Shown piece after piece: positions 5,792 to 28,617 of a DNA stretch of 39,399 nt (the stretch's first letter is position 1; the number at the start of each line of letters is the position of its first letter). Both the position numbers and the translations under genes were made by a program. The stretch is from sequence record KX467643.1; one strand, written 5' to 3'. The notes under the pieces were generated by a model, which saw only the letters and a list, made by a program, of their open reading frames with translations, searched no databases and was not told where the DNA came from.

Positions 5792-5848
5792 GGGAAGAAA
5801 TATTATTTGAAACTTGAAAAAAACTAATGATAAAAAAAGAGAAATGAA

Positions 5849-6013
5849 TTATGCTCCTCTTCTTTGGAGATATTCTTCTAAAGCTTCTTTAATTACGTCA
5901 TTAACTCTTCTATCATGTTCTGCACAATAGACTTTTAGACGTTTTTTTAGAGACTTAGGGATGTAAATTCCAAAAGATACCTTTTCATCTTCTTTTTCTT
6001 CTTGTTCTGTCAT
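5849..6013 (-). CDS. svtR: Ribbon-helix-helix transcription regulator, SvtR (SIRV1 ORF56b)-like, 54 aa; not in the ORF track
   Basis: Translation MTEQEEKEDEKVSFGIYIPKSLKKRLKVYCAEHDRRVNDVIKEALEEYLQRRGA; the FGIY...LK.RLKVYCA...EEYLQ+R pattern matches SvtR as recalled; GGTGA RBS and own promoter. Confidence 0.85.
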   Translation of the reverse strand: MTEQEEKEDEKVSFGIYIPKSLKKRLKVYCAEHDRRVNDVIKEALEEYLQRRGA

Positions 6014-6046
6014 TTTCTCACCTAGGTTGTATTTAGTATTAATCGA

Positions 6047-6064
6047 TATTTAAAGCTTTTTCTA
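6047..6064 (-). promoter_or_regulatory. BRE-TATA promoter of the svtR-like gene
   Basis: TAGAAAAAGCTTTAAATA on the minus strand, about 34 nt upstream of the ATG. Confidence 0.7.
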
Positions 6065-6148
6065 AAAATAAGTTTAGAAGAAAGATGGAAAGAGAAGAGA
6101 GTAAAGAAACAAATTTTTTATCGAAAAATAGAAGAGTAGAAGTTTATC

Positions 6149-6162
6149 GAAAAATTTAAATA
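6149..6162 (+). promoter_or_regulatory. Strong early-type BRE-TATA promoter
   Basis: GAAAAATTTAAATA, 24 nt upstream of ATG 6186. Confidence 0.8.
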
Positions 6163-6176
6163 CCCGTTTTATATAT

Positions 6177-6923
6177 ATGTTGTTAATGCACGGTTTAGAA
6201 GTAAAACAAATGAAGATACTTTATAAGTTACCTAAAGTTTTTTTGACACCCGATTTAAATAAATTTTCTATCACAAGAAACTTTGCAGATTGTTTTTATT
6301 ACGAATCACATTCCGGACTAACGAAAGAAGGTTGTGTGATATTTAATGGTGAAATCAGAAGGACACGTGGAATCTTCTATACACCAATACCGCCCGCTTT
6401 TGAAATATCTTACAGAAGGAAAATGATAAGTGATGAAGCAGATATTAAACTAATATTAGATAGGATTAGTCTTGCTGGTGCTACTCTAAATACAGCATCG
6501 TTTCTAATTAAATGGGATAATTATGGATTTAAGCTTTACGATAAGTTCATCAAAGGAGGAATGTATGAGTTTCCTTTACTGTTTAGTCAAGGACATCTAT
6601 ATGTTTACAACATCCCTAGGGTGAGGGAGGCATATAGGATTATCTATGAAAACGATAACCAAAAGGAGGAAATTGATAGTGAGATGTTTGAAGAGATTAA
6701 CGAATTTAGCGTATACAATCATGCTATCAAGTTTGATAAGAAAGTGCTGAAATTAAAAGAATTGTACGTTTCACCTGGTCAAGGAGTAGTCATATATACA
6801 CTAGATGACGTCACACTTGTTTCAGAGTCACAAGACCACGAGAAAGTCGAGAAATTTGTGTATAAGAATTCGTGGATACTGTTTTCACATCGTGCCCCAC
6901 GTAACCAAGATCAAAGAGATTAA
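6177..6923 (+). CDS. acrIIIB1: Anti-CRISPR AcrIIIB1 homologue (SIRV2 gp48 family; type III-B inhibitor)
   Basis: EVKQ..LP.VFL...LNKF.I.+NF..C.YY.S.SG.T.EGCV, YEFPL, QGHL.VYN.P, YNH...F.K.VL, S.DH and W.LFSH..PR match the AcrIIIB1 sequence as recalled; about 245 aa; true start probably 6186. Confidence 0.85.
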   Translation: MLLMHGLEVKQMKILYKLPKVFLTPDLNKFSITRNFADCFYYESHSGLTKEGCVIFNGEIRRTRGIFYTPIPPAFEISYRRKMISDEADIKLILDRISLAGATLNTASFLIKWDNYGFKLYDKFIKGGMYEFPLLFSQGHLYVYNIPRVREAYRIIYENDNQKEEIDSEMFEEINEFSVYNHAIKFDKKVLKLKELYVSPGQGVVIYTLDDVTLVSESQDHEKVEKFVYKNSWILFSHRAPRNQDQRD

Positions 6924-6974
6924 CATTTTTTTATGATTCTTCTTAATCGAGAAAAATGTTTCTAGAGATTTGTC

Positions 6975-6988
6975 GAAAAATTTAAATA
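6975..6988 (+). promoter_or_regulatory. Strong early-type BRE-TATA promoter
   Basis: GAAAAATTTAAATA, identical to 6149-6162; 21 nt before ATG 7009. Confidence 0.8.
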
Positions 6989-7008
6989 TTTATTTTGTGT
7001 ATTTTTAA

Positions 7009-7239
7009 ATGATAAACATGGGTGGGAAAACATTAATTATAAATTGGGAAAACCCGTTAAATAGAGATGCATATACGGAAATAGGAAAATTGATGGTGTT
7101 AGTTTTGCCGTATGTAATTAATATTGAGATTGTAGATACTGAAGGTTGTATAATGGAAATAGATGGTACAATAGAAGATGAGATAAAGGAGTTAAGTAGA
7201 TTCTTAAAGTATGTTGAAGTGTCTTTTGCAGAAGAATAA
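7009..7239 (+). CDS. Small acidic early protein, 76 aa, candidate anti-defence gene
   Basis: Own promoter, T-rich terminator, next to acrIIIB1. Confidence 0.75.
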   Translation: MINMGGKTLIINWENPLNRDAYTEIGKLMVLVLPYVINIEIVDTEGCIMEIDGTIEDEIKELSRFLKYVEVSFAEE

Positions 7240-7300
7240 AAAATAAGCTATCCAATTTTTTTATAATATAAAAAGAGAAAAATAAAAAAAATAAATTAAC

Positions 7301-7600
7301 TTACTCAATTTCGATTTCTGCATTTATTGCTTCTGCTGTTTGTTCAAGTACTTTTAGTCCATTTGCATATTTTTCAAATCGTTCATTTAATATCTCATCC
7401 GCATTTTCTTTGGCATTTTTTGTTTCATATGAACTGATTGTCTCTATGTAGCCTACAAACTTTTGTTGTTTGTCTTCATACACCAAATCGTTACCTTTCA
7501 CATTTATTACCGCTTTCAATTCAGCCTCAAGTGTTATACTGTAGTCTCTTGTATTTATTTTTAGTTTGTACGAAAGGGTTTTTTGTTTTACTTCCACCAT
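7301..7600 (-). CDS. 99-aa early protein, candidate anti-CRISPR; paralogue of 8165-8452
   Basis: Own promoter at 7631-7644; visible alignment to 8165-8452. Confidence 0.8.
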   Translation of the reverse strand: MVEVKQKTLSYKLKINTRDYSITLEAELKAVINVKGNDLVYEDKQQKFVGYIETISSYETKNAKENADEILNERFEKYANGLKVLEQTAEAINAEIEIE

Positions 7601-7630
7601 TTTTGGTCACTTATATATTGGACAAATAGA

Positions 7631-7644
7631 TATTTAAATTTTTC
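7631..7644 (-). promoter_or_regulatory. Strong early-type BRE-TATA promoter
   Basis: GAAAAATTTAAATA on the minus strand (third identical copy). Confidence 0.8.
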
Positions 7645-7755
7645 TGTGTCTTTCTTCTTTTCGTTTTTTCTAACTAAAAAAAACGTGAAAAATTCCATAC
7701 GATAAAAATATTATCAGAAACATGAGAACAATTAGAGATAAAAAAAAGGAGAAAA

Positions 7756-8028
7756 TTATCTTTCATAATTAGAATATATAAGATCTATAAGGGGTGATAT
7801 CTCTTTTTCATGTTTTTTTAGTATGTCAAGGACATACCATTGATCATTATAGTCTTCAGGTTTTGCTATTATAAACAATTTTACTAATTTTTCCATAAAT
7901 TGAATCCCTTTTATGTGTCCAAATCTTTCATACCACCACTGTATGAATTCAACATTTTCTGTAGACATATAAAAAAATTTATCATTAATTTTAACATATT
8001 TTTCCCCAAATTCTATCTGTTCATTCAT
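7756..8028 (-). CDS. 90-aa early protein, candidate anti-defence gene
   Basis: Own promoter (GAGAAATCTTTAAATA, 8063-8078) and GGGGA RBS. Confidence 0.8.
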   Translation of the reverse strand: MNEQIEFGEKYVKINDKFFYMSTENVEFIQWWYERFGHIKGIQFMEKLVKLFIIAKPEDYNDQWYVLDILKKHEKEISPLIDLIYSNYER

Positions 8029-8062
8029 ACTTCTATCCCCTAATTATCATTAGAAAAATAGA

Positions 8063-8078
8063 TATTTAAAGATTTCTC
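8063..8078 (-). promoter_or_regulatory. Early-type BRE-TATA promoter
   Basis: Shares TTTAAATATCTATTT with the promoter at 7624-7638. Confidence 0.7.
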
Positions 8079-8164
8079 TATTTTTTGATTCATGAAAAAA
8101 TGGACAACTTTCCAGATAATATCCAAAACTTGAGAAAAATTATGTATAAAAAAAAGAAATTGAC

Positions 8165-8452
8165 TTAATCAACTTCTATCATTAGTCCTGTTTTTTCCAA
8201 TTCTTCAAATCCTCTTTTTATTTGTTCTATTCTTTTGTCCATTTCCATAGCAATTACATTTATTTGCTCTTTTATTAATTCGTGTCTTATTGTCTCTAAA
8301 ATTCCTACCTCTTTTATTAAATTTATGCTGTGTTGTACTTCACTGTTTTTTACGTTGAAGACCACTTTCGTTTCACAATCCAAAAAAACTATTCCGTTTG
8401 TTGAATTTACCTTAGCTTTACACTCAAGCTTTTTGGATGTTATTTCCGCCAT
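8165..8452 (-). CDS. 95-aa early protein, paralogue of 7301-7600
   Basis: Own promoter (GAGAAACCTTTATATA, 8483-8498); same AATATATAAGTGACC leader as 7301-7600. Confidence 0.8.
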   Translation of the reverse strand: MAEITSKKLECKAKVNSTNGIVFLDCETKVVFNVKNSEVQHSINLIKEVGILETIRHELIKEQINVIAMEMDKRIEQIKRGFEELEKTGLMIEVD

Positions 8453-13702: not shown

Positions 13703-13993
13703 ATGCAACTTAAAGCCACAAGTTTTAGGGCGAATGAAAAAATAATATTCTTGTTAAATTCTAACAAACTTTTTTGTGAGACTTACGACGAATTTTTAAA
13801 TAGATTGATTGATGAATGTGAAGGAGCAATAAATTACGCTAACAATGATATAACTGAAACCTTATCGATTTATTCTTTCAAACTATCTTCAGAAACGATT
13901 GGGAAACTTAGCACAATAGCAAAAAAATATAGAATTACTAGAAGTGAAGCTTTCCGCAAACTGATATTAGCAAAGGCTGAGGGGCTTTGCTAA
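13703..13993 (+). CDS. Tandem RHH-like protein, 96 aa
   Basis: TSFRANEKI..TYDEFLNRLI and YSFKLSSETIGKLSTIAKKYRITRSEAFRKLI. Confidence 0.8.
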   Translation: MQLKATSFRANEKIIFLLNSNKLFCETYDEFLNRLIDECEGAINYANNDITETLSIYSFKLSSETIGKLSTIAKKYRITRSEAFRKLILAKAEGLC

Positions 13994-14784
13994 TAGTTCA
14001 GGTTGTTAAAAAAGGGTGGTATATAGACTATAAGGTGAGTTCACTTGGCGACATCCCGGCAAAGTTCATACCCTACACAAAAACAATCGGCGAAGAAAAA
14101 TATGGTACAGACGCTATGTGTTACATTGTCTTTCCGTTACGACGAATGGAGCCATCCTTTATTCGTGGAGGGTACAATTTGCGAACCTTTGGTGAACGAG
14201 AAAGAGCAAATCAAGGAGATGGAGGAGGAATTAGAGGATATGATCCTGGACTTGTTTGGTATTCAAGTATTATCTTTGCTAGAGGACGAGGGGGTATGGT
14301 ATGGGGGTGCAGTGGGACGACGGATAGTTTGGTACCACAGGTATCCGGGCGACGGGGGGGAATATACATGGTAGACGCTAAACAGATATTGAAGCTTGAT
14401 ATTGATGTTGACGTGAATTTTTATGACCCTAACTGGTTGCTCGAGAAGAAATTACAACAACTTCACGCACTAGGGTATCAAGAAGAAGACGCGTGGTGGG
14501 AATTTTCGCCTTCTGGAAAACATATTCATATTATTATAGTTTTGAAAGACCCCGTTTCAACTAAAGAACTGCTTGATCTCCAATTTCTTCTTGGCGACGA
14601 TCACAAACGCGTTTATTTTAACTATTTAAGATATTCAGTGATGGGTGAGGACGCCGTTCATTTCAACGTGCTTTATACGTACAAAAAGTCCTTAACTTTT
14701 TCTGACAAACTTAAGGCAATTTTACGACATTGGTTTAGGTCAAAGCAATATTCGAAAAATCGCAATGATGGACAAACTACGTGA
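13987..14784 (+). CDS. 265-aa ORF whose C-terminal 138 aa (ATG 14368) is a minimal AEP primase-like domain
   Basis: LDIDVD (DxD), SPSGKHIH (SxxGxH), LLGDDHKR; TTG start with GAGGGG RBS; internal ATG 14368 preceded by a G7 run. Confidence 0.7.
   Translation: MLIVQVVKKGWYIDYKVSSLGDIPAKFIPYTKTIGEEKYGTDAMCYIVFPLRRMEPSFIRGGYNLRTFGERERANQGDGGGIRGYDPGLVWYSSIIFARGRGGMVWGCSGTTDSLVPQVSGRRGGIYMVDAKQILKLDIDVDVNFYDPNWLLEKKLQQLHALGYQEEDAWWEFSPSGKHIHIIIVLKDPVSTKELLDLQFLLGDDHKRVYFNYLRYSVMGEDAVHFNVLYTYKKSLTFSDKLKAILRHWFRSKQYSKNRNDGQTT
14102..14374 (+). CDS. Acidic 90-aa protein overlapping the 265-aa ORF in the +1 frame
   Basis: MVQTLCVTLSFRY...EQIKEMEEELEDMILDLFG reads like a natural protein; its stop overlaps the primase-domain ATG. 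Confidence 0.55.
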   Translation: MVQTLCVTLSFRYDEWSHPLFVEGTICEPLVNEKEQIKEMEEELEDMILDLFGIQVLSLLEDEGVWYGGAVGRRIVWYHRYPGDGGEYTW

Positions 14785-14870
14785 TATAGTTTTCCAGGGA
14801 TTTCTTCAACAATTGCATAACGTACGAGAATTTTCCCTTCCCCTACCCACCCTTCTTCTATTATTCTCAT
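14673..14870 (-). CDS. 65-aa protein, possible HicB-like (dsRBD-like) fold
   Basis: Divergent promoter at 14893-14910; RYAIVEE..LYHVVCPSL pattern; antisense overlap with the primase-like tail. Confidence 0.6.
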   Translation of the reverse strand: MRIIEEGWVGEGKILVRYAIVEEIPGKLYHVVCPSLRFFEYCFDLNQCRKIALSLSEKVKDFLYV

Positions 14871-26669: not shown

Positions 26670-27701
26670 ATGTCAAGTGTCACACAACCAGCATACACGG
26701 AGGCATTCATGTCAGTTATTGCAACATCAGTCTCTGGTGTAAATGTAAGTCAATACCCGTCACCCTCGGGCTACCATGTTTATTTATCAAGCCAGACTGG
26801 TATCGTTGATAACACGACCAACGTTAGCGTGTATAATGTATCTGATACATATCAGAACAACAATGAAGTTACATCAGTCACATTTATAGCTGTATTTACG
26901 AACTTAAACAGTTACACATTTAATGAGATTCTATTCTATACTCAAGTAAATGGACAAGATTTCATGCAAGTAGCCCAATTCATCCCCTCTTCTGCCATAC
27001 AAAAATCATCTGGTTACGCATTAGTAATTACGATTACGCTCTCAATAGCCACACCTATATATACTATAGATGCCATACAAGATGTACAACAGTTATGTAC
27101 ACAGTATTGTACAAACGTAAACTGTAACACAGTAGGCGGTAACATAGAGACATCATACTTACCATTTTCACTATTTAATCTTGTCTTCTTATATCTACTA
27201 GGTATAAATACTAACACAATAGAACAATCACCAAGTACCCAACAAACAGCTTCTCTATATGCCAACTGTATAAATAGTTGTGTGCAATATTGTAGTACTA
27301 ATAGACCACTTGAGTGTGTAGCATGTTTGAGTGGTTGTCACACGTATTTACTTGAAAACCCATTATTCACATTCCTATTAGCAAATAACATACAAAATAT
27401 TGTTGAGCTATTACCACAAGGTATAAACACTATATACGCTGTTAACGTATGTAGTGGCAAAGTAGCAACACTTACACCCCAAAATTTTCAGAATAACTTA
27501 AATGTTGTTTCACAATCTGAAATACAATATACCACACAGTTCTACTTACAAGGTACTAACGAGTTATTTAACGCGTTACAGATAATGGTGTCTACGTTAA
27601 ATACAAACTATAACTATAGTCTTGGTGTATTGTATTTCACAGGTGTACCATTACCTTCCGGAGAAACCTTTATACTTGAGGTGACCATGAGTGAAAGTTA
27701 A
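26670..27701 (+). CDS. Putative terminal/tail structural protein, 343 aa, Cys-rich
   Basis: GGGTGA RBS before ATG 26670; YTFNEILFY...KSS..LVITI motif. Confidence 0.75.
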   Translation: MSSVTQPAYTEAFMSVIATSVSGVNVSQYPSPSGYHVYLSSQTGIVDNTTNVSVYNVSDTYQNNNEVTSVTFIAVFTNLNSYTFNEILFYTQVNGQDFMQVAQFIPSSAIQKSSGYALVITITLSIATPIYTIDAIQDVQQLCTQYCTNVNCNTVGGNIETSYLPFSLFNLVFLYLLGINTNTIEQSPSTQQTASLYANCINSCVQYCSTNRPLECVACLSGCHTYLLENPLFTFLLANNIQNIVELLPQGINTIYAVNVCSGKVATLTPQNFQNNLNVVSQSEIQYTTQFYLQGTNELFNALQIMVSTLNTNYNYSLGVLYFTGVPLPSGETFILEVTMSES

Positions 27702-28617
27702 AGTAAAAAGCTACTTTACAATTAGTGTTGAAGATAGAACTAAACGACTACACAATACCTTGTCAGCGGAATATATATATTTAATTCAAGGTTTATTAAC
27801 ACAAGGTCAGTCATATCGAGCACCATACTCAGGTTACACCGTAGCCTTTACGCCACCATCGAACATGTACTTTGTGTTTTTAAGCAATGGTGTCGTAGTT
27901 GCACGTTTCCCTGCAAAGTTATTATCGTATAATGAGAATATAAATACTGTTAACACTTCACAATGTCAGAATAATTTGACATCTTGTAATCTGAATAACC
28001 TATTGTTTAGTCTAGAGTATAGTTCCACGGATGAGACGAATGACACATACACGTTCGATGAAGTACAACTTTGGGCTGACAATGAGTACATGATAGCGTA
28101 TGCCAGTGTAGGCACGACCACGAAGAACGCTAACACATTTGTACGTGTGACATGGGATGCCATAATAACAATAGAATCTGATAACGTATTGTATATACCC
28201 GGTTGCACAAACTTCACACTCACATTGAACTCACAGTTACAGTTAAACAATTACCAACCCTATCTATGTCTGAACTTACCGTACATAATCGTCGCACTTA
28301 CGCTTGTCCCATATTCACTTGTTCCGCAAAATACGTTCCTATACACTCAGTTGTCTACGTTACTAAAGATACTAAATATCTCCTCTACACAACAATTACA
28401 ATTGCAAGGAGTACAATATTATGTAGTAGGAAATACGGTATATCCAATATCACAACCTTATATAATTATTAATACCCAACAGCCAAATACTATAACACTA
28501 TTCCTGTTATACGGTATCAATAACAACTACTTTATCTATACAACTTCGTTATCCGTTACGATACAGTACTTTAAGTTATATATTCCTACGCTTACAATTA
28601 ATATGGTAGAACAGTAA
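27691..28617 (+). CDS. Putative terminal/tail structural protein, 308 aa
   Basis: YTFDEVQLW...KNA..VRVTW motif. Confidence 0.75.

Follow-up and report, generated by a model that had tools for sequence, protein, structure and literature searches.

The gene gp27 of Sulfolobus islandicus filamentous virus 2 (SIFV2) is probably a true dual-coding locus, in which at least two proteins would be made from the same DNA. The window analysed, a stretch of 39,399 nucleotides (nt), is the complete genome of this virus (KX467643.1; 100% identity), with SIFV2_gp27 lying at 13987-14784 and carried in GenBank as one gene of 265 amino acids (aa) under the label "conserved lipothrixviral protein". The homologs of gp27 are likewise annotated as single open reading frames (ORFs), namely SIFV0030, AFV9 ORF252, AFV7 ORF267 and ORF267a of AFV3, AFV6 and AFV8. 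Comparison of these and further relatives demonstrates that both frames are maintained by selection and that the start signals of frame 2 are also under selection. All of the elements that an earlier note on this DNA had described were present in the sequence and in the list of its ORFs at the coordinates it gave. Literature searches found no paper mentioning gp27, an overlap at gp27 or a lipothrixvirus primase, and NCBIfam holds no family for any product of the locus. The parts of the locus on which the argument turns are the following:

13987..14784, plus strand: the frame-1 ORF (SIFV2_gp27, 265 aa), consisting of head, linker and tail and open in all homologs examined
13987..14109, plus strand: the head domain (frame-1 codons 1-41, YIDxK ... 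GEEKYGT), under constraint in that frame and conserved in all clades
14034..14038, plus strand: a Shine-Dalgarno-like GGTGA, 6 nt 5′ of the frame-2 TTG, with invariant wobble bases
14045..14374, plus strand: the embedded frame-2 gene, 109 aa from TTG, unannotated in SIFV2, with a ratio of non-synonymous to synonymous substitution (dN/dS) of 0.07 and a predicted local distance difference test score (pLDDT) of 74.6
14110..14367, plus strand: the frame-1 linker, codons 42-127, Gly/Arg-rich, predicted to be disordered, stop-free, with dN/dS ~2
14368..14784, plus strand: the tail domain, 138 aa from ATG 14368, with a predicted RRM/ferredoxin-like fold and dN/dS 0.03 in frame 1

The frame under amino-acid constraint changes twice along gp27. 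Three-frame translations were compared for seven isolates, dN/dS was estimated by the Nei-Gojobori method from 11 sequences and nucleotide diversity was followed along a codon-anchored alignment. For the head dN/dS was 0.14 in frame 1 and 1.8 in frame 2, for the middle of the gene (codons ~42-128) it was 0.07 in frame 2 and ~2 in frame 1, and for the tail it was 0.03 in frame 1 with frame 2 not constrained (>1). Nucleotide diversity reached its maximum at frame-1 position 3 over codons 1-40, at frame-1 position 1 (equal to position 3 of frame 2) over codons ~42-128, with frame-1 position 3 there showing a diversity of only 0.02-0.15, and once more at frame-1 position 3 from codon ~130 on. Among the seven isolates the frame-2 product was far better conserved than the Gly/Arg-rich frame-1 text. 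The dN/dS values in the middle therefore indicate that amino-acid constraint is absent from the middle third of the annotated protein and acts there on a different protein. The comparison of synonymous sites proposed in the earlier note accordingly identified frame 2 as the amino-acid-constrained frame in the middle, and the description given there of the middle (about 14102-14367) as off-frame-like Gly/Arg text in frame 1 agrees with its dN/dS and with a Gly+Arg content of the linker of 32% in SIFV2 (28-33% overall). An AlphaFold model of the 265-aa protein, built on a 61-row alignment, predicted residues 47-129 to be disordered (pLDDT 22-37) and the head to be beta-rich, with beta-hairpins at low confidence (pLDDT ~60).

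The GenBank annotation of the seven isolates takes gp27 as a single gene, in which case frame 2 would be untranslated and its conservation a by-product, and PHROG 12608 (function unknown) covers gp27 over all 267 positions. Against this stand the contrast in dN/dS between the two frames in the middle, the nearly invariant third positions of frame 1 and a frame 2 that is open in 16/16 sequences with a confident predicted fold, leaving the annotated single gene an exceedingly improbable account of the locus.

Frame 1 is kept open across the whole of the overlap. It runs for 265 codons from TTG 13987 to the TGA ending at 14784, with GAGGGG immediately 5′ of the start, as expected from the good ribosome-binding site that had been noted for it, and this start codon shares bases with the gp26 stop (TTGCTAA), an arrangement suggestive of translational coupling from gp26 to gp27. 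The gp26 gene itself (13703-13993, plus strand) encodes 96 aa matching transcriptional-regulator PHROGs (phrog_12301, E 6e-47; CopG-like, E 1e-6). The DNA of 16 variants from at least five clades was compared, including the distant SSFV3 and SSRV2, with 41-49% amino-acid identity, and the metagenomic contigs L015, L017, L019, L020 and L021. Over the frame-2 core frame 1 contained no stop in 16/16 of these variants, with frame 3 containing 2-10 stops over the same stretch, and in a database search 61/61 homolog clusters formed at 90% identity were full length in frame 1 (252-267 aa). Relatives in which frame 1 is interrupted, envisaged in the earlier note as the sign of three ordinary genes, did not occur among the 16 sequences, and its expectation that both frames stay open in all relatives held for them and, in frame 1, for the 61 clusters.

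The frame-2 core is enriched in codons starting GA, AA or AG, such that each genome has 12-19 sites at which a preceding wobble T would stop frame 1. When frame-2 codons were resampled from SIFV2 codon usage, 5.3-7.4 frame-1 stops were expected against none observed (P < 1/3000), and none of the ten genomes tested gave a stop-free stretch in more than 2 of its 3000 trials. Under a stricter null, permuting the codons of the segment itself, 1.8-6 stops were expected and the probability of an open frame was 0.0004-0.09 per sequence (n = 16). As an empirical control, windows of 87 codons taken from the other long SIFV2 ORFs were stop-free in the -1 frame in 9 of 6625 cases (0.14%). The absence of stops in all variants, set against the chance expectation, therefore argues that the openness of frame 1 is selected. 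With the head lacking a stop of its own in the 16 sequences, the long frame-1 protein is the sole way to make it. All nine of the stop-free control windows fell within one ORF at 27691-28614 on the plus strand (9/220 of its windows), and another embedded ORF may lie within it.

Frame 2 is open from 14039 and offers a TTG at 14045 (109 aa) and an ATG at 14102 (90 aa) ahead of its stop (TAG, 14372-14374), remaining open in 16/16 sequences including relatives at only 41% identity. The motif AAGGTGA followed by a 6-nt spacer and the frame-2 TTG was present in every betalipothrixvirus-type sequence. Read in frame 1, the bases of this start signal belong to K16 (AAG), V17 (GTG) and L/I20 (NTT), and the wobble bases at 3/3 of these codons were invariant in 11/11 sequences, with other Lys and Val codons varying; as a control, the wobble base was invariant at 0/12 other head codons with a conserved amino acid. 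In SSFV3, GGTGA, a 5-nt spacer and TTG are found in a different codon phase, and its depositors annotated the equivalent frame-2 ORF (ORF13). ATG 14102 is confined to SIFV and SIFV2. Of what the earlier note had proposed for frame 2, the natural-looking acidic protein has stood, being conserved with an isoelectric point of 4.3 in SIFV2 (4.1-5.1 across relatives), and the start at ATG 14102 giving 90 aa has been replaced by the conserved TTG 14045. A TATA-like TATATA (14019-14024) upstream of the frame-2 start was discounted, occurring only in SIFV and SIFV2.

The frame-2 protein begins with a variable, unconstrained extension predicted to be disordered (residues 1-22), followed by a conserved acidic alpha/beta core (residues 23-109). 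Its AlphaFold model, from a 13-row alignment, had a mean pLDDT of 74.6, reaching 85-90 in the core, with residues 1-19 modelled as disordered and a predicted topology over residues 23-108 of two strands, a helix and three strands. Fold searches with this model (Foldseek, VIA-wide and ESM Atlas) gave no significant match, the best having a Z score of 4.8 to a T-fold-like structure with a TM score <0.5. An ESM Atlas search by features returned no usable match for the frame-2 protein, and a word-index homolog search returned four called proteins only. A match to 9cku in PDB sequence profiles was rejected as an affinity-tag artefact, since WSHPLFVE (14144-14167) resembles the Strep-tag II sequence WSHPQFEK, and PDB sequence-profile searches with the frame-2 and tail alignments gave no meaningful match beyond it.

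Since the Shine-Dalgarno sequence and TTG in frame 2 are selected and no conserved slippery sequence was found, we infer that independent internal initiation is the best-supported route to the frame-2 protein. A +1 frameshift near codon 41/42 would instead fuse the head to the frame-2 core in a trans-frame protein of ~128 aa, maybe with a -1 shift back into the tail, the 265-aa protein being the second product. At ACA RAC (codons 41/42) the constraint does leave frame 1 abruptly for frame 2, and at the frame-2 stop it returns, with no stretch doubly constrained or unconstrained and with the 22 frame-2 residues 5′ of the core unconstrained, and it is because this hand-over is so sharp that a +1 shift is kept as a minority alternative. 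However, the alignment contained no conserved X XXY YYZ or +1 motif at codons 38-46 or at the frame-2 stop, neither boundary showed a conserved motif for slippage or pausing, and a selected Shine-Dalgarno sequence and TTG exist in frame 2. Moreover, candidate relatives of the frame-2 protein occur in remote contexts without a head-like segment (hmmsearch not significant), so that the core works without the head, and a double shift would leave the openness of frame 1 unexplained. In the remote contig L032, a segment fused in frame to a frame-2-like core looked head-like by eye and was set aside, with hmmsearch not significant.

The G7 run that had been noted ahead of the tail domain is present:

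14354..14360, plus strand: G7 run, not conserved in relatives according to the alignment

This run is unique to SIFV2, an A-rich run being found only in MG15 and MG17, and its restriction to SIFV2 rules it out as a slippery site. Programmed frameshifting of the dnaX type and of the G/GT type of tail chaperones is well known, and gp27 resembles these systems in being a conserved locus with two predicted products that share an N-terminus or overlap in different frames, but differs in that no conserved slippery heptamer or stimulator was found and the second frame has its own selected start. Frameshifting is thus an unlikely explanation, and of the "overprinting or programmed frameshifting" suggested in the earlier note it is the overprinting that has been upheld, both frames being open and selected, with the frameshifting losing ground to the lack of a conserved slippery site and to a frame 2 with its own Shine-Dalgarno sequence and TTG.

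At the 3′ end of the overlap, the frame-2 stop overlaps ATG 14368 of the tail in SIFV2 (ATGGTAG), just as had been claimed for the 138-aa domain with DxD, SxxGxH and GDD motifs, and a frame-1 start overlaps or abuts the frame-2 stop in 5/7 clades (ATGGTAG, GTGGTAG or GTGA). Standalone tail homologs start at the equivalent point, 5-10 residues before the hLKhDhD motif. Because a start codon lies at the frame-2 stop and the standalone homologs start there, it is plausible that a short tail-only isoform is made by termination-reinitiation.

The same junction bears on whether the locus is simply three ordinary translation units, a head peptide, a frame-2 protein and a tail protein, with a long frame-1 protein that has no function of its own and an openness that only lets ribosomes loaded at gp26/gp27 reach the tail or has some non-coding cause. 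The start codon at the frame-2 stop in 5/7 clades and the existence of standalone tail homologs would fit such an arrangement, as would a linker that is predicted to be disordered and has dN/dS ~2, and in three records gene callers have split the locus in this manner (ORF13 and ORF14 in SSFV3; frame-2 and tail genes in MG20 and MG21). Against it, the head is constrained in frame 1 without a stop of its own in 16/16 sequences and the openness of frame 1 is strongly non-random in at least five clades, with the result that three independent units appear no likelier than a frameshift.

According to the dual-coding reading, ribosomes would start at TTG 13987, coupled to the gp26 stop, and read frame 1 throughout to produce the 265-aa protein, in which a 41-aa head is followed by an 86-aa disordered Gly/Arg-rich linker, free to drift but held stop-free, and by the 138-aa RRM-like tail. 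Ribosomes at the internal GGTGA and TTG (14034-14047) would read frame 2 into a separate acidic alpha/beta protein of ~109 aa, the folded core of which would be written exactly over the linker with its stop overlapping the ATG or GTG that begins the tail. Termination-reinitiation at this overlap would probably yield the short tail-only isoform, of the size of the standalone homologs, with the lipothrixvirus lineage having added the frame-1 read-through that tethers head to tail.

Nested genes of this general kind are known from lambda, in which the whole of Rz1 is contained in Rz in the +1 frame, and from phiX174, with B inside A and E inside D. The likeness of gp27 to these is that a complete gene with its own ribosome-binding site would lie in another frame inside a longer gene, with both selected. 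The differences are that in gp27 the host frame has shed amino-acid constraint throughout the overlap and retained only its openness, with constraint running in frame 1, 2 and 1 in turn, that the embedded frame-2 protein surpasses the host protein both in conservation and in how well it folds, that gp27 belongs to a crenarchaeal filamentous double-stranded DNA virus and that its probable origin is a read-through fusion spanning an older gene rather than the de novo birth of an embedded one.

For the tail, a profile search of 1.84 billion representative proteins yielded 63 relatives, mostly standalone proteins of 100-165 aa. The SIFV2 tail carries a motif I with D138/D140 (ILKLDID, 14398-14406), a motif II, SPSGKHIH, from S174 to H181 (14506-14529), and a GDD at 203-205 (14593-14601). 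Across 36 diverse members D138, D140, H181, Q199, R208 and R215 were invariant, with K136, G203, D205, N212, N227 and L229 conserved in ≥90% of members. AlphaFold modelled residues 130-225 confidently (pLDDT 75-92) as beta-alpha-beta-beta-alpha-alpha-beta-alpha. D138/D140, H181 and D205 are the residues with which the tail would most likely bind metal and nucleotide, its target being nucleic acid, an enzymatic role that we infer from sequence.

Several consistent but weak similarities point from the tail towards primases. The DNA primase family phrog_1829 matched 29/34 close tail members (best E 9.5e-4), with wider members matched by phrog_8643 (E 4.2e-4) and phrog_3022 (five members), and hhalign against a five-member alignment of pRN1 type (E 0.009) paired the DxD with DxE and the H with the H of HGGIH. 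The order and spacing of the tail motifs match those of motifs I, II and III of primase-polymerases, the positions being 138/140, 181 and 205 in the tail and 111/113, 145 and 171 in pRN1. Compared with the archaeo-eukaryotic primase (AEP) domain of pRN1 ORF904, the tail shares motif I as hhhDhD and motif II (sxH) as G-x-H, with an acidic GDD as a candidate motif III, in the same order, at similar spacing and on an RRM-like unit, but it has only ~110-138 aa, lacks the N-terminal alpha/beta module, the zinc stem and the helicase, and in structure searches does not single out primases. In AEPs motif I is defined as hhhDhD/E, and it is the RRM-like module that carries all three motifs (PMC10345425). 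The GDD of the tail did not align to a known motif III (hD/E, the source of the third catalytic acid), with AlphaFold placing D205 between two helices and not on a strand. The N-terminal alpha/beta module of AEPs is missing in that standalone homologs begin 5-10 residues before motif I and the preceding 86 residues of gp27 are disordered, and because of this absence the tail is called primase-polymerase-like and not a member of the family. That the tail is an AEP primase is thus a weakly supported and unproven assignment. The tail may be a pared-down module of primase-polymerase-like type, partnered by the frame-2 protein. A bolder and rather unlikely version is that the two form a split minimal primase-polymerase, with the frame-2 protein supplying the N-terminal module in trans and with both free and head-tethered catalytic units being made.

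The tail could also be a rolling-circle Rep-type endonuclease of the HUH class, like ORF119 of the rudivirus SIRV1, and not of polymerase type. Its size and RRM-like fold would suit a small Rep, SIFV2 has H179-I-H181 followed by hydrophobic residues with YTYKK further on, and hhalign of the tail against SIRV1 ORF119 (confirmed as 2x3g), run as a control comparison, gave E 0.043 over 21 columns. Foldseek with the tail found nothing significant, its rows mixing HUH Reps (9pqf, 2x3g and 3dky) with LigD polymerase domains, and NCBIfam and PDB sequence profiles gave no match for the tail. The SIRV1 Rep, from the same order Ligamenvirales, is similarly small (~119 aa) and RRM-like with a G-x-H-x-H strand, but the tail family conserves neither a second His nor any Tyr. 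In the 36-member family a single His is invariant, the other position being mostly Gly, and Y213, Y216, Y230 and Y232 are all unconserved, becoming F, L, Q and other residues, with no Rep family among the PHROG matches as against three primase families. Because the first His of HIH and all of the candidate tyrosines vary, a conventional HUH nuclease is excluded, and the HUH assignment that the earlier note had allowed for fails on the conserved residues, making a Rep-type tail very improbable.

Standalone tail homologs were followed into six remote contexts, in 6/6 of which an upstream gene overlaps the start of the tail gene. In the contigs L024 and L032 this gene resembles the frame-2 protein, with the motifs LDYE..H.LYID, FG and IVW.H (hmmsearch E 2e-4 and 4.5e-5 at Z=1, a single-sequence search space; hhalign E 0.012), and in L024 frame 1 is not open across it. 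A word-index homolog search with the L024 upstream protein returned only itself. These arrangements suggest that the ancestral state was likely a two-gene unit, a frame-2-like gene followed by a tail gene, with the head later tethered by read-through in the lipothrixvirus lineage. Directly 3′ of the pair in L024, an unclassified contig, lie genes for a DEAD/ResIII helicase and a Cas4/PD-(D/E)XK nuclease (5792-8283), a neighbourhood of replication or recombination type. In L022, L033 and L034 the overlapping upstream gene is instead helix-hairpin-helix-like (LKGIGRKxAxxL), and its product may be an alternative DNA-binding partner of tail homologs.

A number of observations weigh against the dual-coding reading or against parts of it. 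The switch of constraint at codons 41/42 is very sharp, as a frameshift site would show, and the sequencing runs matching the locus comprised three metagenome DNA runs and no RNA runs. A start codon at the frame-2 stop is missing from SSFV3 and MG20, indicating that a short isoform would not be universal. The remote upstream genes resemble the frame-2 protein weakly, and a predicted complex of the frame-2 core with the tail scored 0.02, a value obtained without controls that is evidence neither way. As regards the tail, its structural neighbours are generic ferredoxin-like ACT/RRM domains (Z 5-6.6) that are not specific to AEPs and its similarity to primases lies only at E 1e-2 to 4e-4. Of the AEP primase domain claimed in the earlier note, the DxD, H and GDD motifs and the RRM-like fold have accordingly been retained, with membership of the family given up on account of these E values, the generic fold and the missing N-terminal module.

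Beyond the dual-coding region, the 3′ end of gp27 is overlapped by a further gene, which the earlier note had correctly recognised as a 65-aa antisense gene and which is conserved:

14673..14870, minus strand: 65-aa gene antisense to the 3′ end of gp27, corresponding to SIFV0031 and unannotated in SIFV2, with a ratio of non-synonymous to synonymous polymorphism (pN/pS) of 0.23 outside gp27

By its coordinates it overlaps gp27 by 112 nt with the third codon positions of both genes coinciding, the least constraining phase for an antisense overlap. The ORF (MRI.EEG ... PSLRFFEYC.DL.QCRKIAL) is kept in SIFV, AFV3, AFV6, AFV7, AFV8, two uncultivated virus genomes and MG19, and is absent from AFV9, in which the gp27 homolog is 15 aa shorter. 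The antisense gene is judged to be real. In SSFV3 (L008:2187-2339) and MG21 (L021:1403-1597) its homologs lie on the plus strand downstream of the gp27 homolog, and from these opposite orientations it follows that the gene was inverted in the SIFV/AFV lineage.

The finding implies that a core gene of all betalipothrixviruses and of related filamentous viruses of Sulfolobales, described for 25 years as one hypothetical protein, would hide a second and better conserved protein, with one third of the annotated gp27 protein being translational filler, and a model group of archaeal viruses would have its gene content corrected accordingly. The locus would offer an unusually clean natural case of one gene lying within another's linker, with constraint passing between the frames, on which tools for finding overlapping genes could be tested. 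The tail defines a previously undescribed family of proteins of 100-165 aa with DxD, H and GDD motifs; a frame-2-like partner often accompanies them, and in one case a helicase and a Cas4-like nuclease lie alongside. To our knowledge no replication protein has been described for lipothrixviruses, and for this reason the pair of frame-2 protein and tail is a concrete replication candidate. Should the split primase-polymerase prove true, it would be the missing replication-initiation enzyme of the lipothrixviruses and the smallest primase-polymerase known.

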